Of a stretch of DNA of 64,000 nt, positions 16,904-38,651 are shown piece after piece (the first letter of the stretch is position 1; the number at the start of each line of letters is the position of its first letter). The stretch is from Phaeosaccion multiseriatum. Lineage: Eukaryota; Protista; Ochrophyta, other classes. The notes under the pieces were generated by a model. It saw nothing but the letters and a program-made list of their open reading frames with translations. It did not search any database and was not told where the DNA came from. The position numbers and the translations under genes were made by a program. The stretch is taken from the NCBI GenBank assembly GCA_965112735.1, contig OZ218950.1:3782001-3846000 (forward strand), read 5' to 3'.

Positions 16904-19900
16904 GAGGACGAGGATGAGGAGGATGCTGCTGCGAAGGCACGAGCAGCAGCAGCAGCAGCAGCTGAAGCAGCAGCAGCATGGAGGAATCTCCTGACGGGTG
17001 GCACCAAACCCCGAGAGGTAAACTCTTCGACACATGTGCCACAGCCGCCTGCGCTCGCGACTGCAGCAACGGCCATTGACCTTCGGAGTGTGAAGGATGC
17101 AAAGGGGAGGCCGCTGTCGAAGACAGCACGGCAAGCTTTGGCGCGGAGGCTCGCCAGCGGGCCATCCCCTCCATCAACAGTGGCTGCATCAGCGGGACAG
17201 CAACCACAATGTAGACGGCGATACGATGTCGAGGGGTCGACAGAGAAGGAACACATGGAAAAGGCTGTATCTGCTGTGAAGAATGATAATGTCAGCCTTA
17301 GGAAAGCGGCGCGGCAGTATGGAATCACAAAGACTGCTCTGGAGATTAGGTGCAAGGGACGGGTTGCTTCTGTGGCTGTTGGTGGGAAGGGCAATCAAGC
17401 CTTGCCTGCCTCAACCGAAGCGGCACTGGTGAGATTTGTTGTGGACATGGCAGACAGCGGCTTTGGGGTTGACTGGAACCATGTAGGCTCCCTGGCCAGG
17501 GGTATGGCCCATGCATTGGGAGTTGCTGCATTCGTGGCATCAGGAGGCTGGCTGTAGGGCTTCAAGCGCCGCCACCCAAGTTTAGTGACGCGGCGAGCCC
17601 AGCCCCTTGCGCTCACAAATGAAGCGGGGCTGCAACGACACGACAAGGAAGGAGTATCTAGACGAGGTTCTACCTAGGTGAGTCCACGTTCGTGTACATT
17701 CCTGGAGGGCAGGATAGCGCCCCGCCCCCCCCCCCGCGGCCCCCAAAGTGACTGGAGAGGGGGGTGGGGGCAGGGACAGGACAGAGGAGAGGCGCGTGCG
17801 ACAGGGAGAGGGCATAGGGAGAGGGAGAGGGCGAGGGCGAGGAAGAGGGGGAAGGAGGGAGAGAGAGTGTGTGAGGGAGAGAGGTCGGAGGGAGACGGAA
17901 GGAGATAAGGAGATAAAGAGGGAGATGAAGATGGAGAGGGAAGAGGGCAGAGAGAGAGAAAGGCCTGTACTCTCCCCCACCAAATGACTTCATCCATCCT
18001 TTCCCATTGTCCTCCGTATCACCACGATAATAATTGTTCTCTGCCTCGCTTGCTTATCTCCCCTTCCTTCCCCTCCCCTTCTCAGTATGTTGGCAAAGCT
18101 GGCTGTGGCATCCGGGTGTGAGGTGGGGGACCTCCAACCGGTGCAGTTCTGGAACAGCGATGAGACAGGCATGAATAACCAGCGCGGTGACATGACCGTT
18201 GTTGCCCAAAAGCGGCGCAACCATGTGCCAATGACAGATCAGGAGCGATCAAGTCACGTCACTCTGGTCGGTGCTGTCGATGCCGCTGGTGGATGCATGA
18301 GCCCGTTTTTCGTCATTGCTGGAGCACGGAGGCAGGCACACATTGCCAATGCGGACGCATCACCTGGCTCTGACGTGGAAGAGTCCTTGCCCGCCACAGC
18401 AGAGATCCATTACACGGAGAACGGATACGTCACCGACGAGCTCTGGACAGAAGCAGTCGTGCCGTTCTTCATCAAGCAGAAGCGAGCCCGCATGCAAGAG
18501 CAGGCGGGGCGCGATATGCCGATTTTGCTCTTGATGGATGGCTATGGTTCGCACACGATGACCCCGGATGCTCTTCACGCTATGCGCGAAGCCGGCATCA
18601 TCTGCGCATGCATGCCCGCGCACACATCGGGGGAGTTCCAACCTCTGGAAGTCAAAGTCTTTCGCCCTTTCAAGGCCGCTCTGAGGAGCGGTCTCTCGGG
18701 CTGGCAGCGACGCTTCAACAGAGAGAACATGAGCCGGCAGGAGCTTCTTGTTCTGGCCTCCGAGGCTCAAGGGGAGAGTCACAAGTCGGAAACCATCAAG
18801 TCCGGATTCAAGGCGACAGGCTTTTACCCGCCCATGTCTTTCGCCGACTTCACCAGCGGAAGGGCCCCTGCTGAAGGGTCCATCAGCAAGGCCTTTGCTG
18901 ACGTCACACGGGCCAGTGGAGACGCCAAGGCATCGCAGTTGCAGGAGATGACAAAGGCTTTCGACGCGAACATGCTTCAGCGAGTGGGCTCTTCGTCCTT
19001 CGCAGCCGACATGGTCAAAAACCCTCTGCTGGACCTTACACCTGCGCAGGCGAGGGAGCGAGTTGCGAAGGCACAGGAGCTGCTCATGACGGACGATGTG
19101 GCAGCTGTGCAGCACCTCCTTCTCCTTCCTCATGAGCATTTACAGTCTGTGGACAGACTATCGCAGCTAAGGCGCAAAAGCGCCGTTGCGAACCGCAAGC
19201 AGGGCGCCGCCGCAGCACGTCGCTTGAACGCCATCGGGGAGTCAACGTTGACGTGTAAGGACCTTAGCACGAAAGAGAGGGTCTCTCTACTGAGAGACAA
19301 GATGGCAGAGAGGGAGGAGGCAGCGCAGGAAAAGGCAGCGGCGGAGAAGAAGAAGGACGAAGAAGGTGTGACGGAGGCTGTCCTGAGAACTCTCGGGTCC
19401 ATTCCGAAGGGGAAGAAGAGTCTCTTGAAGGGAGTCTTTGGGCTTTCATCAACGCCCAAGCCAGCACGTCTGAAGTGCGCAAGAAGGCCCCCGACAAGTC
19501 GACCAAGAAGCAAGAGCTTCTCGCCTACGTGAAGTCGTATGTCGAGACAGATGCGCGAGCAGCAAGTTGGATAGGGGCGCCAGAGCCCGCTGAGACGGCA
19601 GAAAAGGGACATGATCTGGCAGCGTCTGCAGATGAAGAGGATGAGGCAACAGAGGACGAAGGGCAAGGAGAGGGCGATGTCAGCCCAACGGCAGCGTATG
19701 AAGAGGGGGCAGAGGAGGCCGCAGCGACATCCCCATCCCCCAGGGGGGGAAGGGGGGGGGGGGTGAGCGCTGGTGAGCGAGAGGCCCTGCACACACGCGT
19801 TGCAGACGTGGAGAGGACGGAGGGAGATGTGACGGGGGTGGGGAGTGGACGAGGGGCCGAGAGCGTCAGGAGCAAAGAGGGAGGCGAAGACAGTCGGTCG

Positions 19901-21110: not shown

Positions 21111-22111
21111 TACTGGTAATACATTGTCTCCCTTCTAATCCACCACAGCCAAAGACGGGCCATAGATGTGCTATTTGATCAAACTGTGGGCATCGCTCAG
21201 GAAAATGAAGAGGCCTGTACAATCTGTTCATCTGTGGGGGTGAAAAGGGCCTTAGCTACACAATAACTTATCCCAAGACCTTTAGGCCTTCTACACGGTG
21301 GCTTGGATAAGGCTTGTATTAGGCTTATATTGCTGTCACCATCCATATCATAGCTATGGCTTCGCCACAAGCGTGGCCTGTCTGGTGCCGACTTGCGGTG
21401 TTCTACGCCCATACAGTAGCCCCACCACAATGAGAGCAAAGCAGCCTCAACCGTTCGTCTCCATCTCCTGCCTTGCAATGCACCTTCTCGCCACAACCAC
21501 ACCCCTACTCAGTTAGTTCCTCATCTCGGCCCCCCTGTGCCTGACCGTGCCGACTCGCACGCGCTCTCCATCAATCACCACGCCACCTCGCTCATTCACG
21601 GAGTGGACGGCCGCACCCAGCCAGACACCACAGGTGCCTCGTACACTCTTACCTTGTCCATGGTTGGTGAGAAGAACAACTTGAGCGAAGGGCAGGTGCA
21701 GCAGCTCGCGCTTGTCGTTGAGGGGCGGGGAATATCTGGGTCTCCTCGGTGTACGATAACGCACTGGCGCAACGCCGCGCAGGATATGCCCCCCACAACC
21801 TCTTGCAGCGGAGCTTCCGCCATAGCGCTTGTTTGGGACAGAGAATGATAGCGAGGGGGTGGGGGAGGGAGTGTGCAAGCGAGGGATTGAGAACGGGAGC
21901 TCCCTCCCCTTCTCACCTCTCCTTCAGCACGCACGCAGTCTCTCCCCAAACGAATCGCCCACTCATTCACTCATTCCCTCTCTACCTCAAAATACAACTC
22001 TCTCACCCACCCATCACTTCGCTACTCCCTCACTCACTCCCTCCCTCGCTCACCATGTTTCTCGTCGTCCCCTTCGTCGCCCACCCTCTCTCTCTCACTC
22101 ATTCCCTGGTT
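21111..22111 (+). repeat. Left arm of long diverged inverted repeat (continues at 15800-15814, on the far side of the pogo insertion)
   Basis: Colinear reverse-complement similarity to 37524-38638, from TACTGGTAATACATTGTCTCCC to CATTCCCTGGTT; many substitutions and indels. Confidence 0.92.
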
Positions 22112-25451: not shown

Positions 25452-27462
25452 TCAGACTCCTCGGTTGTCGTGCTCGTCCTCCTTCTCACCGTCCTCGTCC
25501 CTGGCGGCGAGGATGTCTTGCAGGATCTGCTCCTCGCTGATCCGTTCCTCCTCCTCGTCGTCGTCCTCCTCCCGCTGCTGCTGCTCCTCCTTCTGCTCCT
25601 CCTTCTGCTCGTCGTCGTTGTCGCTGTAAATGTACTTTCCCGGAACGTGGTCCGGCACGTACCGGTTGGTCGGGTCGTCGACGACCTTCCGTGACAGGCG
25701 CGGCTGCGGGTTGACCGTGTTAAAGGCCTGGTGGATGAGGATCCAGTCGTGGCGAGTGGTCCAGCTGACCGACCAGACCTTGATGTTCATGGCCGTAACG
25801 CGGTCCGCGTCGTCCTTTGTGCGGTACAGGTGGGGGTACATCCTCCCCCGCTTGTTAAGCTCATTGCCGGTCACCTGCTTGACGGCATGTGGGAGCATCT
25901 CTCGGATCTGCTCGACCTCCTCCTTCACCCCCGAGTTAATTTGGAAGACGGCCCTCCACATCCTTGTCCCGTCGGGCGAGAGGTACATGAGGGCGGAGGA
26001 GCCGTCCCCTGAGCGAGGGAGGGGGGGGGGGGTGGGAAAGGGGCAAGCAAGCAATGCATGAGGCAGGCCAAGTCAATTACGTGAGGGCGCATTGCTGAGC
26101 GATGATGGGCAATCTTACTCACCATCGGAGAGGCCGATGATGAAGGAGATGATGATCTCGGCCATGAAGGGGTCCGTGAGCGGCCTCTCCGGCTCGCCAG
26201 CAAGGGTCCAGAGGAAGAGGCACCGGAGACGTGGGTAAAACTGGAACGTCTTACTGCTCCTGCACCCCGAATAGAGGTGGAGGACAGCGAGGGCCTGGTG
26301 TGGGTGCGGGCGTGCAAGCCACGAGGTTAGCTACGGAGGAGCGAGTCAAGCGAGTAGCAAAAAGAAACGCTACATACCGTGGGGTTGTGGTAGAGCATGA
26401 GCCGCGACCGGATAAAATTGCCATGCTTGTCTTTTGCCGTCTTGCTGACTTGCAGGTACGGCTTGCCGGCAAAGCCTCCGTCGAAGTGAAAGCGAAAGTA
26501 CTCCGTCGTTGGCGGCTCATCTCTGAGTCCCACGCCCACCCTGTTGTAAGAAACGATTCCATCGGCGCCCCCCATACCGTTGTTGACAGCCAACGTCTTG
26601 CGCCCCTCCTTCGACTTGAACATCTGGAGGTAGAGGTTCTTTCCCTTGGGCCCCTTTGAGCCAGGCGCTCTCCCACTGAGCAGGTAGTCGGGCCGATTGG
26701 CGACGACGAGAGCGACCTTCCCCTCCGGCGAGCATAGGAATCGCTTGTACAACCATCGAAGCAGCTTGCGGGAGGCCTGGTTTGTTGAGGGCAGGGGTGG
26801 AGGGGATCGATCGTTTGAGCGAGGGCAGTCAACCAACTAAACACGTCAACAAGCAACCGCTCACCTGCTCCAGATTGAAGTCCAGCGCCTCCTTCGGCGT
26901 ACGAATGTTAGCCTTTGGGCACTGGTCCCACAGGTTCATGACGTGTCGCGTGTCCTCGTTCCTCCAACCGTCTGGCTTGCTCGCCTGCGTCACAAAGGCT
27001 TCGAACTGCTCCCTTGTCTGCAACTGCAGTATGTCGCCCTTGAGTCGCCGCTTCTCGTCCTCGGTGTTCTGCCCCCGTGTCATTACGGTGTGCAGGTTGC
27101 AGTGGGGCAGCTTGAGCTGCGCACGCCCGGACCCTGTCTTGCTGAGGTAGTGCTCGTTGAGGTGGTTCCAGACCTCGAGCTTGTGCGGGGAGAGCAGGCC
27201 GGTCTTGCTCAAGAATTCCAAGTCTCGGAAAGAAATGGAAGACTTGTTGGGTTTGTTGGCATTCCCGGAATGGTTCTTGAACCGCAGAACTTGGTCCAAG
27301 AGTTGGGCGTGAGGGGCCTGCTTGTACTTTGCTCCCTTGGGTCCATGCGCCTCGTTCGAGAAGAGGAGGCTCGTGGCCATTATCGCGCGTAGGGTGCTTG
27401 GGGGAAAGCACTTTGCGTTGTGCACTGATTCAAGGACCTAAAGTCGAGGGACGATACAGGCA

Positions 27463-27497
<35 letters not shown>

Positions 27498-27529
27498 CAG
27501 TGAGTGAGAGAGAGAGAGAGAGAGTCAGT

Positions 27530-27575
<46 letters not shown>

Positions 27576-27579
27576 CAGT

Positions 27580-27629
<50 letters not shown>

Positions 27630-30600
27630 CAGTGTGAGTAACAGCCACGCAGAAGCAAGCAATGGCTGAGGCAGCCACTCGCATACTAGTACCAACCTCG
27701 TCTACTCTCCGGTCGTTGTGCAGTCCATTCAGCACCATGGGCCCCGTCCTCATCGTGGACGATAGCACAGGGAACCCCAAGCAGGAAATGATCTTCCCCG
27801 TCTCGCCATTGTGTCGGAGAAGCTCCCCCCACAGCGTAAAGCCCTTGAGTAGTTCGGTGGGGCCGCTGCTCTTGTCGCTGGTTCCGCGGCCGAAGTAGCG
27901 ACCCTTGGCCACAACATTCAAGTGGTCGGCGAGGAGCTGCTGTTCCGTCTCGCCGTTGGCCTTGGAGAGGATGAAGTCCCTCCCATGGTCGTCGCAGTCG
28001 TCCGGGTTTGCCCCAGGGCGCATTGCGGCCGCAAACTCGTTAAACCCGGGGTGATTCCCCGAGCAAAACTTGAAGGTCTCGGACCCAGACTCCCCGGTCG
28101 CAGGAAAGCCAGACTTGTGGGTTCGCCACAACGTCTTGGCCGCCATGTCCCCTGCCTCCTTGGTATGCAGGGTGGGGCATTTGACCACCTCCTTGCAGTC
28201 GGGGCAGGTAAACTGCACAATTCTACCGCCCTCGGGCCACACTGCCTCACCTCCCCATTCGTACCCACCAGGGGGTAGCTCATGGCACCCACAGTAGGGG
28301 GTGGTGGGGGACAGCAGGTATCCTGCCAGATAGTTGTCGCACTGAGCAGCGGGCGGGGGTTGGTCCAAAATTAGCAAAAAAAAAAAGACCGCAACAAGCT
28401 GTGTCAGCCAGCCAGCCACAAGCAAAAGCACCTACCGCTTTTTTCACATCCTTCGGCTTTGGGTTTTCCCCGCGGACACCCCAATTCTTCAGCATTTGCT
28501 TGACTTCAGCAGCCACGTCCTGGTGCACGAGCAAGGTTGGGACAGCACACAAATCAAAGTCGTGAGCAAGCAAGGCCCTGCGCGGCAGGAAGCAGCCAGC
28601 CCTTGCTTGCCTTGCTTACCACAGTGTTGACGGTGTTGCCGCTACTCCTGCTTCCTGCTCCATCAGCTTGTTGCTCCTCGTCCTGGGGGGGGGGGGGGCA
28701 GAGAACCAATCAACCCGTGAGCAATGCACGCACGTCTTCCTGCTGCATCAGCCCACGTCTTACCTCATCCTCATCGTCGCTGCTGCTGGCGATATCAACA
28801 ACTGGTGGTTCCTGTTGCTGCTCAGGACTGCGCCTGTCGCCCCCCCGGTCGGCACCCCCATCGTCGTCGCTCATCCCGGTGAGGTCAATGACTGCCCCCT
28901 CCTCCGTCTCACCGGGGCCGGCCGCAGGGGCTTGGGCCATCAACTCGTCCTCCTCCTCCTTCTCCCCGTACTCCAGCTCGGTAGCGTCCGAGTCCTCCTC
29001 AATCTCCAGTTCCGTATCGGCCACACTCTCATCGTCTTCCTCCCGGTGGCCTTCGTTGTCTCCTCCTCCTCCTCCTCCTCCTCCTCCTCCTCCTCCTCCT
29101 CCTCCTCCTCCTCCTCCTCCTCCTCCTCCTCCTCCTCCTCCTCCGCCGCCGCCGCCGCCGCCACCACCCCTCCTCCTCCTCCTCCTCCTCCGCCGCCGCC
29201 GCCAGCCCCCCGCCCCCCCCCTCCTCCTCCTGCTCCCTCCATTCGGCTCCGACTCCGCTTCTGCCCGCGACCCCTCCGTCCTCCTCCTCCTCCTGCTCCT
29301 CCTGCTCCTGCTCCTCCTCCTGCTCCTCCTGCTCCTCCTGCTGCTGCTGCTATGCCCTCCGGAGACAATGCCTGGCCGTCGCAGGCCTCATCACTCCTCT
29401 TGCTCTCTTCCACCCCTTCGTCCGCCATGGCCTCGTAGGGAGAGTTTGATGGGAAGAGGAAGGTTCCGTCAGCTCCGAGATGGACGAGCACATGGGGGGT
29501 CTCTCCATGCAGTCGGTGGGCTCGTTCTGTGGTAAACGTGCCCAGAAGCACACCATCCCGCAGCTCGTTGAGTGGTACGTCGGGTTGGCGCTTGACGACG
29601 ATGCATCTCTCACCACCCAGCGCCCTAGTCTCTTGCTCGAGCAGGAAATCGGTGCGAGGGCAGAAGCCCTGGCACTCCTCTCCTCCTCCTGCTGCTCCTG
29701 CTCCTTCCCCCGTGCCCCTCTCCATCCGTTGGCTTGGGAAGTCCAAACCCCCATCCTCGCGGAGAGTGACCATCTCAAGGGTGGCCTCTTCTCCACCAAG
29801 TTCAGTGGCCCTCTCAATGGTGAAGGTGCTGTAGAGCACCCCATCCCGATCCTCATCCTGAAGCTCGGTGCCCGTCTCGAGGACGAGGATGATGAAGACA
29901 TTCCTCCTCGCCTCCACATCCAGGAGCTGCTGGGTGCGAGGGCAGCTGCTGCTCTCACTGACGCGATACAGGACGGTGGTGGCACAGTCCACACCACCTT
30001 CCACGCTCCTCAGGAGCGCTTGCTCACCCATGTCATGCCGACACACCCTTGCATCGTCGGCCATGTACCAGTGTCCTTCGTGCTTATAGTGGGCCACAAA
30101 GTGCCCTGCACCGTCAGCTCCTTGGTGCACCAGCACGGCGGAGGCGTCCACGGACAGGCCTCTCCGCTCCATGCGTCCGGGAATGTGGATGGAGGACTCG
30201 ACATCTTTGAGGACCTGCGGGGGGGGGGGTTTCGATCCGTCGGTCTTGTTCTTGCTCCCCTTCTTCTTGCTCCCCTCCTTCTTGCTCGCCTCCTTCTTGC
30301 TCGCCTCGCGCAAGCGCTGAGAGTTTCCAAGCAAAGCATTAGGCAGAGCAAAGAGAAAAAAAAATCAAAAAAATCAACGGTTAGTATTATGTCAATGGCC
30401 TAGTCTTAAGCAACCGCTCGCGCCTTTTTTTTTTCCTTCCCTCAACGCCCTACTAACACTCGCGCACTCGCACACCCCCCAACTCTTTGCTTTGCTCTCT
30501 CTCTCTCTCTCACACACGCACACACATTCACACACACACTCTCACACCCACCACACGCACGCACACCACACGCACACACACACACACACACCACACACAA

Positions 30601-31840
30601 CACGCGCGCACTCGCACACACACACACACACATACACAGACATACAGACATACGCACCCCCCACTCTTTGCTTTGCTCTCTCTTTCACCCACACCCACAC
30701 CCACACCCACCCACACGCACACAATTCATTCACACGCGCGCACACACACACTGACACGCACACACACTCACACACATTCACACGCACACGCACACAATTC
30801 ATTCACACGCGCGCACACACACACACACTGACACGCACACACACTCACACACATTCACACGCGCGCACACGCACACCCACACATACACACACACACGCGC
30901 GCACACACACCCACACACACCCACACACTGACACACACACACACCCACACCCACACCCACCCACACGCACACAATTCATTCACACGCGCGCACACACACT
31001 GACACGCACACACACTCACACACATTCACACGCGCACACGCACACGCACACCCACACACACACACACACATTCACACGCACACACATTCACACACACATA
31101 CACACTGACACGCGCGCACACACACACACATTCACACGCACACACGTGCACTCGCACACACACGCACACGCACACACATTCACACGCACACACACATACA
31201 CAGACCCCCCCACTCTTTGCTTTGCTCTCTCTCTCTCTCTCACACACACCCACACCCACACACGCGCACTCGACACCCACCACACGCACGCACACCACAC
31301 GCACACACACACGCACACGCACGCAAACGCACACGCACACACACCCACACGCACACAATTCATTCACACGCGCGCACACACACACACACCACACGCACAC
31401 ACCCACCCACACACATTCACACGCGCGCACGCAAACACTCACCCACCCCCGCACTCACGTTAATAATGACCATGACATACTCGGGGGGGGGCTTGGACAT
31501 TTCCATATTGCTCGACAAGCCGTCCTGGACAGCGTCCTGGATAGACTCGTTCATGATGGCGTCGGCCGTAACCGTTAGGACCATGTCCTCCGCCCCACAG
31601 TGGTTCATGACAGAAGCGGCGACGTTGCCGGCGTCGTTCTGCCCCCCCCTGTGGCACATGCCCTCGTCTGCGAGCAACTTCTCCAGCTTGTCCATCTCGT
31701 GGAGGGGCAGGGGCGGGCCTTGCTTGTTGATGGCCTCGCCGAGGGCCGCAGCTGCAACCCCAAGGAGGCTTTTGCCCTTGCTCTTGACGGACTGGCACAA
31801 GGTGGGGCTGCCCCGCGTGGCGGAGGCAAACTGAATTGGG

Positions 31841-31871
<31 letters not shown>

Positions 31872-32278
31872 AGAGAGAAAAGTGAGCTCGGGAGGTTCAC
31901 TTTTTGCTTGACTCGGACCTCATCGCCCCGGCATCTACGTACCAGCTGAAGCGCAGCCGCAACATAGCATTGGTTTAGTCTATTCTCACACCCGCGGGAG
32001 GGAGGGGCGTTGTTGATATTGTTGTTCGCCCCGGTGCGGGGCGAAACGAGGCAGCGGTTTGTCGAAGCCTTATCGATAAGGCGGGGAAAGTCCTCGTCGC
32101 TGTCGAGGCTGAAGGTGGCCCCGTCGGTGGAGGAGGAAGTGGGGGGCGCGGAACGCTTCTTGTGGCGGGCATCGGTGCGCGGCACGGCCCTGCCCCGTTT
32201 GGCCACTTCAAACCAATCTCCGCCCTCCTCGGCCGCCGAAGAGGAGCCGTGCGCTGCGTTCTTTCGATTGTCGGACAT
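25452..32278 (-). CDS. Putative USP(C19)-deubiquitinase / double-LAGLIDADG endonuclease multidomain protein (~1,600 aa); exons 31919-32278, 31459-31830, 28764-30316 (one unresolved frameshift or intron), 28620-28682, 28436-28519, 27697-28341, 26865-27437, 26378-26776, 26123-26294, 25452-26008
   Basis: Cys box [34 protein letters not shown], His box [48 protein letters not shown]-like motifs [12 protein letters not shown] and [13 protein letters not shown]. All listed junctions are GT-AG and phase-compatible, except that 28764-30316 is not a multiple of three. Confidence 0.7.
27465..27628. repeat. (GA)n microsatellite, intronic
   Basis: Directly visible. Confidence 0.97.
29060..29345. repeat. 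(CCT)n / CCG / CTG trinucleotide low-complexity tract
   Basis: Directly visible; coincides with the frame discontinuity of the large gene. Confidence 0.95.
30455..31455. repeat. (CA)n-rich compound repeat filling intron 30317-31458
   Basis: CA/CACG tracts with recurring ACTCTTTGCTTTGCTCTCTCT (x3) and CACAATTCATTCACACGCGCG (x4). Confidence 0.95.
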
Positions 32279-33193
32279 TTCGATTGTCTGCTCGTCTGCT
32301 GAGGGAGGTGCGGAGAGGCCGCGGAGTTAGAGCAAGGAAGGCGCGGGGGGGGGGAAGTAGACGTAGAGGGTGGGCGACATTATTCGCTGCTGGCAATGAC
32401 GCACGCGCGAGGGTGCTCCATGGAAGCATCACGCGACGCACACGCACCTGTTGTATTTGCTTCTTGCTCTCTCTGTGGCTGTCTGTGTGTTGTGGGCTTG
32501 TTTTTGAAAAAAAAGTGAGCGGGAGATGCTCTCGGCGCTAAGTCGCCAAACCCCGGGGGGGGGGCGGGGGGGCCACTCTTCGATTGGAGAACGAATAACA
32601 TGGTTTCAGCTCGACGACGATGGTGCGAGGGGGACGAGGAGGAGCGAGCTTGCCTCTGGTGGCAACAACAAGCATGTCACAGAGAATCGACGTCGGGCTC
32701 CGGGTTCTGGGCCATAGCGCCGCCGCAGGCCAGCGGTCTGGGCTTCAGGGGGGGGGGGAGGGAGACATTATGCTGGCTTCGGGGGGGCTTGTTGCTTTCG
32801 GCCGCAGGCCGCCTCAGGCTTCTGCTGCTTATCGGGGGGGGGGGGGGGAGCCGATGCCCTGGACGATGTGCGCCCTTCTTCGCCGCCTTTGCTGCGCGGG
32901 CTTGCTTCAAAAGTGACCTTTTCCGGAGAGAATAGCAGGCTCTCGCTCGCTCAAACGACTCATGCCCCATCTACGTCAGCTCCGAGGAGCGGGCGAGGCC
33001 GGAGACCTTGTGGCTGGATTGGGAGCGGCGCCTGGCCGGCAGTAGCAAGCACCATGGACTTTGAGGAAGTAGCAGTTTTATTTTTAGTTATAGGGGAGGT
33101 TCTCCCCGGGCGAAGCCCGGGGAGAATTTATCCTCCAAGCGAGTTAACGAGCGGGAGGAGAAACCTCCCTTCTTAGGGGAGGTTCTCCCCGGT

Positions 33194-33735
33194 CAGCTTT
33201 CTCATCAGGTACACCAGGACTCGCTCTGCCCTGCTGTGCCGCCCGCACGAATGGATACTGGGGAAGAAGAAGGGGGAGGCAGGTTCTTCTCCTGTGAGGA
33301 GGAGGGAGTTCGAAGAAGGGCACCGACATTAATGGATACAGGTGGGGGGGGGGGTGGGGAAACAGCCCAAGGCAGCGGTGGATTAGCACGTCCCACCACT
33401 GTGGGGCGAGAGAAATGCCATAAACTAGGTCTTTAAAAGACTTTGCGGAAAAATGGCACGGCCGGGCATGGACCACCAGCATCAGTTCCCTCACAACTCG
33501 GCAGCAGCAGCAGCACCACCACCACAGCAGCTTCAGCTTTCTCATCAGGTACACCAGGACTCGCTCTGCCCTGCTGCGCCGCCCGCACGAATGGATACTG
33601 GGGAAGAAGAAGGGGGAGGCAGGTTCTTCTCCTGTGAGGAGGAGGGAGTTCCAAGAAGGGCACCGACATCAATGGATACAGGTGGGGGGGTTGGGGAAGC
33701 AGCCCAAGGCCGGTGGATTACCACGTCCCACCACT
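33194..33735 (+). repeat. Tandem duplication of ~205 bp (33194-33400 and 33534-33735)
   Basis: Both copies begin CAGCTTTCTCATCAGGTACACCAGGACTCGCTCTGCCCTGCTG and end CACGTCCCACCACT. Confidence 0.93.
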
Positions 33736-35712
33736 CCGCCAAAGGGCACTGCATACTGGCTGCTGCTGCTGCTGCTCTCGGCCAACAAGCGACAGGGGGG
33801 GGGGGAAGGAGAGGAGGATTAGCCCAGCCATGACACCCCACCACTCCGCCACTCTGATCCTTTACCCCGACACCGGCAAGGACGTCAGCCGCTAGGAGTA
33901 TCGCCTCAGCCACAGCCACCACCGCCAGCAGGAGGGCCTGCAGCAGCTGCTGTGCCGCCCCCACCACACGGCCACCAGCCAAGCCAACCACGACTCAGAC
34001 CCACCAGGCAGAGAGAGGCTTCCTCCCCCGGCGAGGCTGCTTTCTCAGGAATACTACGTTGCCTCCACCACGACGGCAGACGCGAGTGGCAACCAGCCAG
34101 GGAAGACGCGGAGGCAGTAGACTAGAGGGAGGGGGGATATGCACCAGCAGAGGCAGGGCGAGGCAGGGCAGAGGAGGAGGCAGAGGCAGCATTCTAGAAC
34201 GGAGGGCCGCACATGCTGCTGTGGAGAGAGCAACGGTCAGCAGGCTCAGTCCCGGTACAGCTGTATTACGGAGGACGACACGTGCTGTAGCGGTCCCGCA
34301 GAGGTCACGAGTCCGCAATAGCTCCAGTCCCACCACGACCCTGGACCACGGAGGACGGCACGTGCTGCAGCGCAGAGATCACGAGTCAGCAAGCTGCCTG
34401 AGTCCCGGTACTGCTCGAGCACGGAGGACGAGACGTGCTGTAGCGCAGCAGAGCAAAGGGTGATAGCTGCGAGCCTGCCTGGCTCGATGGTGTGGCTGGT
34501 CGGTGCTAACGACAATGTTCTTTCGGAGGAGGAGCGCGGCGTGCCAGTCCAGTGCCTGCACGCATTGCCGGCACCGTCGGGATGATGCCTCTCCAGTTCT
34601 AGCAGCAGCAAGCGGCTACAGATCATTGGTTAGCTCAGTAGCTTCAGTTCCTTATGTAAACTTACGTAAATATGTACCTATTGCCTGCGTTTGGCTGTGT
34701 ATAGGCCGCGTTGTTGGCCCTGCAGTGGCTGTCTTAAAACATAGGCTCCACAAGAAATACTACCACAGCTTGCCTGACGCAGTTACGGGAGAACCTCCCC
34801 TATCACGCTCTTCTTGTATAACTTACTGCTCAGCTCACTTCCCCCCTTGCCCGCCGCTCCCCCCGTTCGGACAGCGGCACATCGGACGGGGATAGAGTGG
34901 TTGATTGCCTTCCCCTCCTGCTCCTTCTCGTCCGCTGTGAGGGGTGTCACGCCAGCGCGCTGCCCGTGTCCAATCCATCTAAAGGCAGGCATACCATCCA
35001 TGCCAAGGTAGGTATTCTACTCTCCGTCGTCGAAGCTGAAGCCCATGGCCTGCAAGGAGGGAGTAGTCGACGCACACACGTCTCTTGTGCACAACAAGCC
35101 TCTTGGGTTTCCGCGTCGACGCCATATGTGAGGCCGGTGCCTTCCTCCTCTTTTAAAAATGGAGGGAGGTACCGGCCCCACACTACTGAGCAGCTGCGGC
35201 CCGAAGGAAGCCACCTCGGGAGGTGCGCTGCCGATCACTTCCAAAGGAGTGTCTGCAAGGTCGTTTAGCCAGGAGGGGCCCGTATCCTGTCCATCCTCTT
35301 CCAACCCTCGCCCCGATCTCAACCCCCGTATGCAGCGAGGTCGGTCCTCTGCCTTTTCGTCCTTCTCCAAGGCCTCACCCGGCACTGAGGGGTCATTCGC
35401 CCTCAATACCCCCCTTAGTCTGGAGGTCCCTACCTCCTCCGCCGCTTGACCATCTGCGGTCGCGAGGACTTGTTGTTCACCTTTCGTGACGACGGGCCAA
35501 GGATATGGAGGGTTGGGCAGGAAAGGGCTGAGCGACGGGCTTTTTGATGGCGCCAGCAGGCATGGCGGGCGCAGACTGGGATAGGGCCAGGGAACGAGGG
35601 GCGGAGGGAAGGGAGAAAGGCACAGTGGGGTCCGCTTCGCCCCGTCGAATCACTTCTTACGCCCCATGCCTCTTGTCCCAAGCAATCCCTCCTTTTTTTT
35701 TGCCTCCCCCCC

Positions 35713-36235
35713 GCCCCAGCTTCTTGGACCCTGAGCCTCTGTGGCCTTCGCGTGGGTTATGGGTTTGAGTGCTCTCGCTCCCCAACCATTCCATACTTCA
35801 GCCTGCTCACCTCATGTTTTTCCTGCGGCCCGCCCGTCGGCCTTATTTAACCCTGCGTGGGGCAGCGGGATAGGAGGTCAGCTTAGCACTGGATAAACAT
35901 TACGCCAGGCAGGCACCCTGCTCGTGGTCGCCCTCTTCCCTCTTACCTCTTGCCCAGCCATGGCTGGCTGGACGGACGAGGTCCAGACACGTTCCCTCTC
36001 TCTGCTGTCGAGCTTCTCCGGTCCGCCCTCTCCGTCCTCTCCGCCGCCCCTGCCCTCCGCCCTGCCTCTTGCCTCTTTACTTTGCGGCAAAAAGAAAGAC
36101 GACAGAAAAAAGAGTAACGGCAAAAACCCCGTTAAGAGTAAAACCTCTCCCTACCATACCACATAAAGATGTCTATATACTGTCGCTTCCATGAACGCCA
36201 CCTAAAATCCCCGTCGCCGCTGTTTGCTGTCGCCA
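35713..36235 (+). repeat. Diverged direct repeat, copy 2
   Basis: Same ordered blocks as copy 1 at 22900-23525. Confidence 0.85.
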
Positions 36236-37523
36236 AAGTTGGCAACGGCAACGGAGTAGACGGTATCGTCCAAGCCCCTCCACAGAAAGGTGTCTAAGAG
36301 CGCCTCAAGCTCATCACCATCTTTCGGCCGGGACCGCAGGGCACAACCATGAGCGAAATCTCCAGGTCTGGCTCATTCTGAGCACAGGCACACCGCAGCA
36401 CTACGGCCTTTCGGCGGGCGGGGAGCGACATCATCCTGATAGATGTCACAGACTCTCTCTTTGGGAGCGGAAAGGGGCTGATGCTTCTCACGACCCAAAG
36501 TGGAACAGGGTGGTGAGTGAATGAATGAATGGCTGAGTGAGTCATTGATTGTGTGAGTGAGGAAGAGACGAGAGACTCATCATTCCTTGCTCCGCCCATC
36601 CTCTCCCTCCCTGTAGACAGCTCGGCGCAGACGGTTTCTACGTCTCCGCTAAGCCGGCAAGCGCGCGCGCTGGGCAAGGCGCTGTGTAACCTTGGGATGG
36701 GCTTACTCAAGTGTAATCTCGATGCACAGCGCTACTTGCAAGCCTCGGTTCACGGGGCAGCGGACTTCTTGTTCGTCTTCGCCTTCGTCTTCTCTGCCTT
36801 CTTCTCCCCTGCCTGCTGCTGCTTCTGCCACTGCGACTTTGGCGGCAGCGCTCAGACTGCAGGTTAGCGACCATCCTTTTTTACCTCTGCCTTTCGTTGC
36901 CATCCCATCCCTTCCTGCCCTGCCTTCCTCACCCAAGTCTCGGGGAGGACAGAGGGACGGTGGGGGACCCACGGAAGTTGGGAATGGACCTTGAGATATC
37001 AAGTCCCTTCTCTCGTATCTGTACTACAGTATCCGTCCTCTCATTGTCTCCTCCATCTCTAGGGCCTCCATGAGGCAGGGACATGAGCACTTCGAAGATT
37101 CAAGTGAGTGTTGTGTAGTGGGTGTGTCTCATAGACGCACACACAAGACATACGCATTGGGCAAAGAGCGAGAGGCGCTTCAAAGAGAGCTCGACAACAG
37201 CTGCGGATGTAGAGGGAGGAGGGAGGAAGGGCAATTTGCATGGGAGAGCTATCCAATTGCGGTGGGGTGACATAGTGAAGGGCCCTTACTACAGCACTCG
37301 TGGCCCTGAGTCACACTTCTCTCCCCTTCTCTCACAGAACATGAAGCCGCGGGCCTCCAGAGACGACGTGTGCGCACAATGAAGCAGGTAAGAGCCCATC
37401 TGGCGAGGGGGGGTGTAGGGAGCCTTTGCTCTTGCGTTGCCTGCTTGGCCTTGCATTCAAAGGCGTTAGTGGACGCCATCAATGTCCACCCCTGGGCACC
37501 AGGTCAGTCAGTCAGGGTCTCCC

Positions 37524-38651
37524 AACCAGGGAATGAGAATGAGTGAGAAGGTGGGCGACAAAGGGGACTACAAGACAAATGGTGAGCGAGGGAGGGAGTA
37601 GCGAAGTGATGGGTGGGTGAGAGAGTTGTATTTTGCGGCAGAGAGGAAGTGAGTGAATGAGTGGGCGATTCGTTTGGGGAGAGACGGCGTGCGTGCGCGC
37701 GCGATTGTGAAGGAGAGGTGAGAACGGGAGGGAGCTCCCGTTCTCAATCCCTCGCTTGCATACTCACTCACTCACGACCGTATTCACTCACTCGCTCCGT
37801 CACTCTCACCCACTCGCTACTTCACCCACACACACTCCCTCACTCCATCCCTCTCTCCCTATGCATCAATCTCCCTCGACCTGTCTCTCCCTCCCTCCCG
37901 CTCCCCCCCTTACCCCCTCGCTGTCATTCTCTGTCCCAAACAAGCGCTATGGCGGGAGCTTCGCTTCAAGAGGCTGTGGGGGGGCATATCCTGCGCGGCG
38001 TTGCGCCAGTGCGTTATCGTACGCCGAGGAGACCCAGATATTCCCCGCCCCTCAACGACAAGCGCGAGCTGCTGCACCCGCCCTTCGCTCAAGTTGTTCT
38101 TCTCACCAGCCATCGACAAGGTAAGAGGGTAAGAGGCACTAAGAGGCACCCGTGGTGTCTGGCTGGGTGTGACCGTCCACTCCGTGAATGAGCGAGGTGG
38201 CGTGGTGATTGATGGAGAGCGCGTGCGAGTCGGCACATTCTTGGGGGGGGGGGCTGGTATGTGTGGGTGTGGCGAAGGTGCATTGCAAGGCAGGAGGCAG
38301 AGACGAACGGTTGAGGCTGCTTTGCTCTCGTTGTGGTGGGGCTACGGCGGGCGCAGGGGGGGGGGGCTTAGAACACCGCAAGCGGCACCAGACAGGCCAC
38401 GCTTGTGGCGAAGCCATACGATACGGATGGTGACAGCAATATACGCCTAATACAAGCCTTATCCAAGCCGTCTTGTATAAGTGTTATCCCAGCCATCGTG
38501 TAGAAGGCCTAAAGGTCTTGGGATAAGTCCTTATATACAGGACTTCATTTTTCTGATGCCCGCGGTTTGATCAAATAGCATATCAATGGCCCGCCTTTGA
38601 CTCTGGCGGATTGGTAGGGAGACAATGTGTTACCAGTAGTGCCATCTGCGG
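37524..38651 (-). repeat. Right arm of long diverged inverted repeat
   Basis: Reverse complement matches 21111-22111 plus 15800-15814. Confidence 0.92.

Follow-up and report, generated by a model that had tools for sequence, protein, structure and literature searches.

A LAGLIDADG-like motif split by an intron at the 3' end of a multicopy nuclear gene in the alga Phaeosaccion multiseriatum

We analyzed a stretch of 64,000 nucleotides from Phaeosaccion multiseriatum (assembly GCA_965112735.1, contig OZ218950.1, positions 3,782,001 to 3,846,000), called the window below and numbered from its first nucleotide. On its minus strand, a spliced, multicopy nuclear gene of mobile-element type, without detectable relatives, has its 3' end at 25452. 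The last two exons of this gene join to encode a LAGLIDADG-like motif, G-L-S-D-G-D-G-S, which is interrupted by a 114-nt intron. The most likely specific reading of the C-terminal part, which we put forward tentatively, is one divergent I-CreI-like LAGLIDADG domain with a single motif.

Exon-intron structure and copies of the gene

The last three exons form a chain on the minus strand (26776-26378, 26294-26123 and 26008-25452) that is joined in frame through GT..AG introns. The predicted product of the 26123/26008 junction reads ..FIIGLSDG/DGSS.., with the interrupted Gly codon restored by splicing. Further upstream, the exons 28682-28620, 28519-28436, 28341-27697 and 27437-26865 share one frame with these three, giving 830 codons in seven exons (E4-E10), a stop at 25452, and GT..AG boundaries for all six intervening introns. 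Seven exons joined in this way by six introns are beyond chance, and the locus is therefore a real gene, now or recently. The whole gene model, with a part further upstream included, contains nine GT..AG introns. The features of the seven-exon frame, all on the minus strand, are:

25452-26008, minus strand: E10, the last exon including the stop; open frame, with the AG acceptor at 26010-26009
26009-26122, minus strand: intron of 114 nt, phase 1, GT..AG, splitting the motif between GLSD-G and G-DGS
25998-26135, minus strand: LAGLIDADG-like motif G-L-S-D-G-D-G-S, its codons at 26135-26123 and 26008-25998 flanking the intron
26123-26294, minus strand: E9, 172 nt; its 3' end encodes the predicted hydrophobic helix and supplies the first base of the Gly codon
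26295-26377, minus strand: intron of 83 nt, phase 0, GT..AG, frame kept
26378-26776, minus strand: E8, 133 codons, containing an alleged first motif at ~26593-26558
26777-26864, minus strand: intron of 88 nt, phase 0, GT..AG, frame kept
26865-27437, minus strand: E7, 191 codons, predicted helical, with language-model features like those of tyrosine-recombinase-derived families
27438-27696, minus strand: intron of 259 nt, GT..AG, filled by a (CT)n microsatellite
27697-28341, minus strand: E6, 215 codons, rich in Cys and His, without a match to any family
28436-28682, minus strand: E5 (28519-28436) and E4 (28682-28620) with the intron between them, small exons in frame with E6-E10

The intron within the motif has a poly-C tract ahead of its acceptor, and an in-frame TAA stands right after its donor, so that read-through of this intron is not possible. 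Exon 10 encodes the stretch from DGSS through a putative strand-strand-helix core (to ~25686), followed by an acidic low-complexity tail. A first-pass annotation had described a LAGLIDADG domain hidden by spliceosomal introns, one of them splitting the motif; its exon boundaries and the split motif hold. The exon 26294-26123 ends in ATC GGC CTC TCC GAT G before the donor GTGAGT, and the exon that starts at 26008 reads GG GAC GGC TCC after CTCAG; the 114-nt phase-1 intron does lie inside the Gly codon, and the spliced protein continues as annotated down to the stop at 25452. The nuclear character of the gene was also borne out by the nine GT..AG introns of the model and by a G+C content like that of the surroundings, which is 0.55-0.62 throughout the window. 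These same two properties, the matching G+C and the spliceosomal introns, led us to reject a recent insertion of organellar DNA. Residence in a group I or group II intron or in an intein was not detected, although no search aimed at inteins or self-splicing introns was made; the coding sequence forms the end of a nuclear gene with many exons.

Only four runs, all from one study, contain the stretch, and no RNA run is registered among them. Contigs of these runs extend across the introns, and the runs thus behave as DNA. Hundreds of short contigs with 95-99% identity were found across the 6 kb compared, which makes the gene multicopy. Introns 30317-31458 and 27438-27696 were skipped as repeats in the read mapping, and the bins of zero depth at 29100-29299 and 30500-31299 likewise fall on skipped microsatellites.

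The differences between the gene and its closest paralogue are confined to the predicted introns, which gives indirect support to the exon-intron model. One paralogue contig (25846-26362) has seven listed substitutions and an 8-nt deletion, all of which fall in its 182 intronic bases and none in its 335 exonic bases. Within the 114-nt intron, the paralogue contigs show four substitutions together with the 8-nt deletion. Three further contigs (26078-26399) have all 3 of their differences inside the 83-nt intron and none in the flanking exons, and three substitutions in this intron were seen in all four runs. For exon 9, no differences are listed in any aligned contig. The same pattern gives indirect support for constraint on the exons in at least some copies, namely in at least one paralogue. 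When all listed variants are taken together, 18 codon changes are amino-acid replacements and 2 are silent, a pattern that fits repeat copies drifting apart, and this particular copy may be decaying. The 'potentially active' status first given to the putative nuclease is conjecture.

As a side observation, paralogue contigs carry two or three adjacent changed bases within single codons at 25779-25786 and 25941-25943 (AAG to GCA, CAA to TCC). Such multi-base codon changes are unusual for independent point mutations and may reflect gene conversion or divergent contig ends.

Motif, profile and fold tests of the C-terminal part

The C-terminal string is a strict match to G-h-x-D-G-D-G-S at the end of a 12-residue hydrophobic segment, as at a helix end that carries a metal-binding-type acidic residue. 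A strict and contiguous motif of this kind is expected ~0.03 times per shuffled window, which by sequence makes it notable, yet not unique at the scale of a genome or of a scan. An EF-hand-type calcium loop at DGDGSS was also considered and rejected, as the Gly6 and Glu12 positions do not fit.

From this motif and its setting we infer a possible mode of action. The last ~140 structured residues, which start in the final part of exon 9 and extend into exon 10, would form one divergent single-motif domain of the LAGLIDADG type. Two copies would pair through their motif helices, with the GDG Asp of each contributing to a common metal site, and a roughly palindromic DNA site would be recognised by the strands after the motif. 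Cleavage there could then trigger repair-mediated copying of the element. Alternatively, the domain could bind DNA without cutting it, with WhiA and the maturases as precedents.

As a source of LAGLIDADG domains, 120 viral loci with AGFIDGDG were fetched, and a hidden Markov model (HMM) was built from 36 non-redundant domains found in them. Ten sampled viral domains were all called LAGLIDADG_1 by Pfam, but at 19-41 bits, which indicates that library profiles are weak for this superfamily. Our own HMM was also the only profile scored against the complete spliced domain, the library profiles (Pfam, PHROGs, NCBIfam) having been run on single exon pieces. The spliced C-terminal domain scored 5.5 bits against the 36-domain HMM, a score that none of 500 full shuffles reached. 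With hhalign, 47 columns around the motif (helix, two strands and the next helix) aligned to the 36 LAGLIDADG_1 domains, at a probability of 39% with a 510-residue query and 71% with the 143-residue domain.

AlphaFold2 was given 25641-26006, that is exon 10 alone, as a single sequence and without the motif helix. The resulting model, with a predicted local distance difference test score (pLDDT) of 51.5, has the order strand, strand, helix, strand, two helices, strand, helix. Its strand-strand-helix-strand start is that expected of a LAGLIDADG core. When Foldseek was run with this model against the PDB, seven of the top 50 rows were LAGLIDADG proteins (bI3 maturase, I-LtrI, I-AabMI, I-GzeII and I-OnuI), with bI3 maturase as the best of them. 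The shape search of the ESM Atlas returned the WhiA cluster (LAGLIDADG_WhiA / LAGLIDADG_3) as its first row, and the WhiA_N and LAGLIDADG_1 clusters were also among the ten family sets. One fold family, specified beforehand, thus recurs in two libraries from a sequence that lacks the motif, and for a predicted model we regard this as a real but weak hint.

A further set of results weighs against a LAGLIDADG domain. Shuffles that kept the helix and the motif reached 5.5 bits in 27 of 500 cases and, in a second run, in 42 of 500. Against an HMM of second domains the spliced C-terminal domain scored 1.3 bits, which 173 of 500 motif-kept shuffles also reached, while true C-terminal domains of double-motif enzymes, taken from outside the training set as a positive control, scored 13-26 bits and were matched by none of 200 shuffles. 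The hhalign score of 30.2 compares with 26.9 +/- 2.1 for motif-kept shuffles. Nearly all of the signal is thus the motif itself, and the sequence beyond it adds a marginal signal (p ~0.05-0.08).

Sequence searches for relatives point the same way. Pfam, PHROGs and NCBIfam returned no LAGLIDADG match, nor any other of relevance, on any exon piece at E-values up to 10. A phmmer search of the exon-10 core against 1.84 billion representative proteins found no LAGLIDADG protein and just two spurious repeat proteins; in the PDB, phmmer with the same core found none either, the sole match being the hairpin against designed beta-propeller blades. Language-model features of the exon-10 core in the ESM Atlas gave nothing above 0.79 and no integrase cluster. 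In exon 10, every difference listed for a more distant class of copies changes an amino acid; within the FQIN strand, Q is replaced by S and N by H. Elsewhere in the gene, the ESM Atlas features of exon 6 were blank, a word-based search with exon 7 found no homologue, and in metagenome contigs neither the exact 24-mer of the spliced junction nor any relative was found.

The structural evidence carries its own counterweight. In the exon-10 model, an insertion of ~30 residues separates the third strand from the fourth, at the position expected for a beta3-beta4 hairpin. The first-pass order of secondary structures is only partly seen in this low-confidence model. The LAGLIDADG rows of Foldseek have E-values of 0.2-0.6 and a template modelling (TM) score of 0.28, with no row at E <=0.001, and the ESM Atlas shape matches, at TM 0.38-0.40, are below significance. 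VIA-align, run against 48,161 representatives and as a re-ranking of the Foldseek list, had no LAGLIDADG chain among its best 50 matches in either case. Its best matches were generic ferredoxin-like two-layer sandwiches at Z 5.6, where the stated noise level of the tool is 7-8. All of these shape searches rest on one poor model. Taken together, the profile and fold tests neither confirm nor exclude a LAGLIDADG fold for the C-terminal part.

Alternative readings and the upstream part of the gene

Exon 7 offers a second lead. The language-model features of this exon resemble those of the DUF3504, QRICH1, NDC10_II, Phage_integrase and Phage_int_SAM clusters (0.91-0.94, recognition 2717), and the protein may contain a degenerate Crypton-type recombinase core. 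Pfam returned no recombinase match (PF00589, PF12012, PF16787) on exons 7, 8 and 10, and AlphaFold2 modelled exon 7 alone at pLDDT 42. Cre from phage P1 and ~165 Cre-like integrases were fetched, of which 24 non-redundant sequences went into a Cre-like HMM; the whole E7-E10 product did not match it (-2.4 bits; 0.3% in hhalign). No integrases were found among the fetched viral loci. The residues R-H-R-Y can be placed by eye in two ways, inside exon 7, where the Arg positions are lost, or across exons 8-10, and neither placement has an alignment score. Because recombinase motifs can be drawn in two places, matching by eye is unreliable here, and the same caution applies to the LAGLIDADG reading.

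Almost as likely as the I-CreI-like domain is a chance look-alike: a mobile-element protein would end in a small, unrelated alpha/beta domain, and GLSDGDGS would fall at the end of a helix by accident. The domain would then serve DNA or protein binding, and the whole protein may be Crypton-like, exon 7 encoding a degenerate core that resembles a tyrosine recombinase. This explanation accommodates the negative or marginal outcome of every significance-bearing test, including the generic two-layer sandwiches of VIA-align, whose Z of 5.6 lies under the noise level. Loose LAGLIDADG-like strings occur 0.5-1 times per shuffled window, very many windows were screened, and the two mutually exclusive recombinase 'motif sets' drawn by eye in the same protein illustrate how easily such matches arise. 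The DUF3504, NDC10_II and integrase families to which exon 7 points fit it as well, as does the cysteine peptidase of stramenopile CryptonS elements (PMC3212892). However, a strict motif with a preceding hydrophobic helix and a following hairpin is rare by chance, LAGLIDADG-fold families recur in two shape libraries from a model without the motif, and no other fold has been positively identified.

A more elaborate scenario is unlikely. The gene would belong to an undescribed nuclear mobile element of a stramenopile alga, whose large spliced protein would combine a working LAGLIDADG nuclease with a dead recombinase-like core, a Cys/His module, acidic stretches like those of SUMO interaction, and a part that resembles deubiquitinases. 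Such an element would spread by nuclease-triggered copying, as a homing-type gene that was colonised by spliceosomal introns and amplified to many copies.

We consider it very unlikely that the gene encodes a double-motif, monomeric and catalytically competent meganuclease, with an N-terminal domain ahead of the GLSDGDGS domain. The first-pass annotation had proposed this architecture from a weaker upstream repeat. The upstream string around GMGGADG is indeed present in exon 8, at 26593-26546, and the two strings lie in one frame ~120 residues apart, a spacing typical of single-chain enzymes, with an acidic residue in each. However, the loose pattern that the upstream string fits is expected about once per shuffled window, which is chance, and no profile supports it: two LAGLIDADG profiles gave the region -1.8 and -20 bits, no higher than for shuffles, and hhalign gave it 0.45%. 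The segment ahead of the string is polar and Gly-rich rather than a packing helix, and exon 8 matches no library profile. The string therefore stands as sequence, and the double-motif architecture was not borne out.

Exon 8 also shows, over its residues 10-57 (26606-26749, minus strand), a weak likeness to the C-terminal BRCT region of the NAD-dependent DNA ligase LigA (NCBIfam E 0.06, PDB E 1). This is probably noise, though it recurs in two libraries.

The least credible of the readings, to which we give very little weight, makes exons 8-10 the catalytic domain of a Crypton-type tyrosine recombinase and the LAGLIDADG-like helix the helix preceding box II: the by-eye candidates (Arg in GLRDE, Lys in SKTAK, RMWR for HxxR, His in LPH and Tyr in RMY) have a spacing that seems to resemble Cre and Xer, exon 7 with its recombinase-like features adjoins them, the gene is multicopy and Cryptons exist in stramenopiles, but the E7-E10 product fails against the 24-sequence Cre-like HMM and in hhalign, PF00589 and PF12012 have no match on exon 8 or exon 10, the exon 10 features include no integrase cluster, and an equally good by-eye pattern inside exon 7 makes the match unspecific.

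Upstream of the 830-codon frame lies a further coding region:

29700-30316 and 31943-32278, minus strand: USP-like part, with a borderline UCH His-box and a Cys-box-like string

For Pfam UCH the His-box reaches 22.7 bits, just below the cut-off of 23.9; the Cys-box-like string is in exon 1, for which Pfam has no match. The USP-like frame loses register with the 830-codon frame downstream of it within a GGA/GAG/GCA microsatellite at ~29050-29350 (minus strand). This loss of register may reflect a frameshift in this copy, another hidden intron, or two separate genes, and a single transcription unit that unites the two parts is not shown for this copy. Nearly all of the 1142-nt GT..AG intron 30317-31458 (minus strand) is made up of microsatellite arrays rich in (TG)n, in which GAATG and GAGAGCAAAGCAAAGAGT units recur.

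The neighbours of the gene are ordinary eukaryotic genes, encoding CDC73, RNA 3'-phosphate cyclase, a protein kinase, Duc1 and a peptidase C69. Inverted repeats of ~1 kb at 21111-22111 and 37524-38638, made up of ten collinear pieces with 85-96% complementarity, enclose 15.4 kb in which the gene lies. The interval from the gene to the right arm (32300-37500) lacks any open reading frame of at least 150 codons. Just outside the left arm, a 481-codon open reading frame at 18087-19532 (plus strand) encodes a pogo/Tc5-type DDE_1 transposase domain (E 2e-11).

Comparison with known LAGLIDADG proteins and CryptonS elements

The closest comparison for the candidate domain is the I-CreI type (Pfam LAGLIDADG_1, PF00961). 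In both, G-h-x-D-G-D-G-S closes a hydrophobic helix and precedes a hairpin and a helix, predicted ones in the present protein, and the domain has ~130-140 residues with one motif. Unlike I-CreI, the candidate has no profile-level similarity, carries the ~30-residue insertion at the position of the beta3-beta4 hairpin, and stands at the C-terminal end of a protein with at least 830 residues. Its gene is nuclear and multicopy with spliceosomal introns, and no surrounding group I intron or intein was detected, although no search aimed at these was made. The fold and the activity of the candidate are putative.

Yeast HO is a nuclear LAGLIDADG gene, and such nuclear genes, transferred mitochondrial ones included, are generally recognisable by sequence and are either single-copy or recent transfers. 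The present gene shares with them a LAGLIDADG-type motif in a nuclear chromosome. In contrast, it is an orphan, matched to its genome in G+C, multi-exon and multicopy. Mitochondrial homing-endonuclease genes inserted in nuclear DNA are described in a preprint (bioRxiv 10.1101/787044).

WhiA and the LAGLIDADG maturases use the fold to bind nucleic acid without cleavage. The WhiA cluster at the top of the Atlas rows and the bI3 maturase in Foldseek allow a binding-only role for the present protein, but the TM scores are only 0.28-0.40 and there is no sequence similarity. WhiA also lacks the acidic motif residues, which the present protein keeps.

The CryptonS elements of stramenopiles are multicopy and have a conserved C-terminal region of unknown function and, in some, a cysteine peptidase (PMC3212892). 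The present gene resembles them as a multicopy, intron-containing gene in a stramenopile alga, with DUF3504, NDC10_II and integrase-like features in exon 7 and a peptidase-like part upstream (the UCH His-box at 22.7 bits). It differs in that no recombinase match is seen at the HMM level, the catalytic R-H-R-Y residues have no placement backed by an alignment, and the peptidase-like part is USP-like (C19), not Ulp1-like (C48).

To our knowledge, nearly all LAGLIDADG enzymes belong to organellar introns, to inteins or to genes of archaea, bacteria and viruses, and nuclear examples are few. Should the motif be a look-alike, it would be a documented case of a perfect short motif misleading in an orphan protein, and a multicopy orphan gene with a possible Crypton-like core would remain. 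If the I-CreI-like reading is true, a nuclear, intron-split, multicopy family ending in a LAGLIDADG domain would show the recruitment of such a nuclease by a eukaryotic mobile element, and would offer new natural meganuclease scaffolds.

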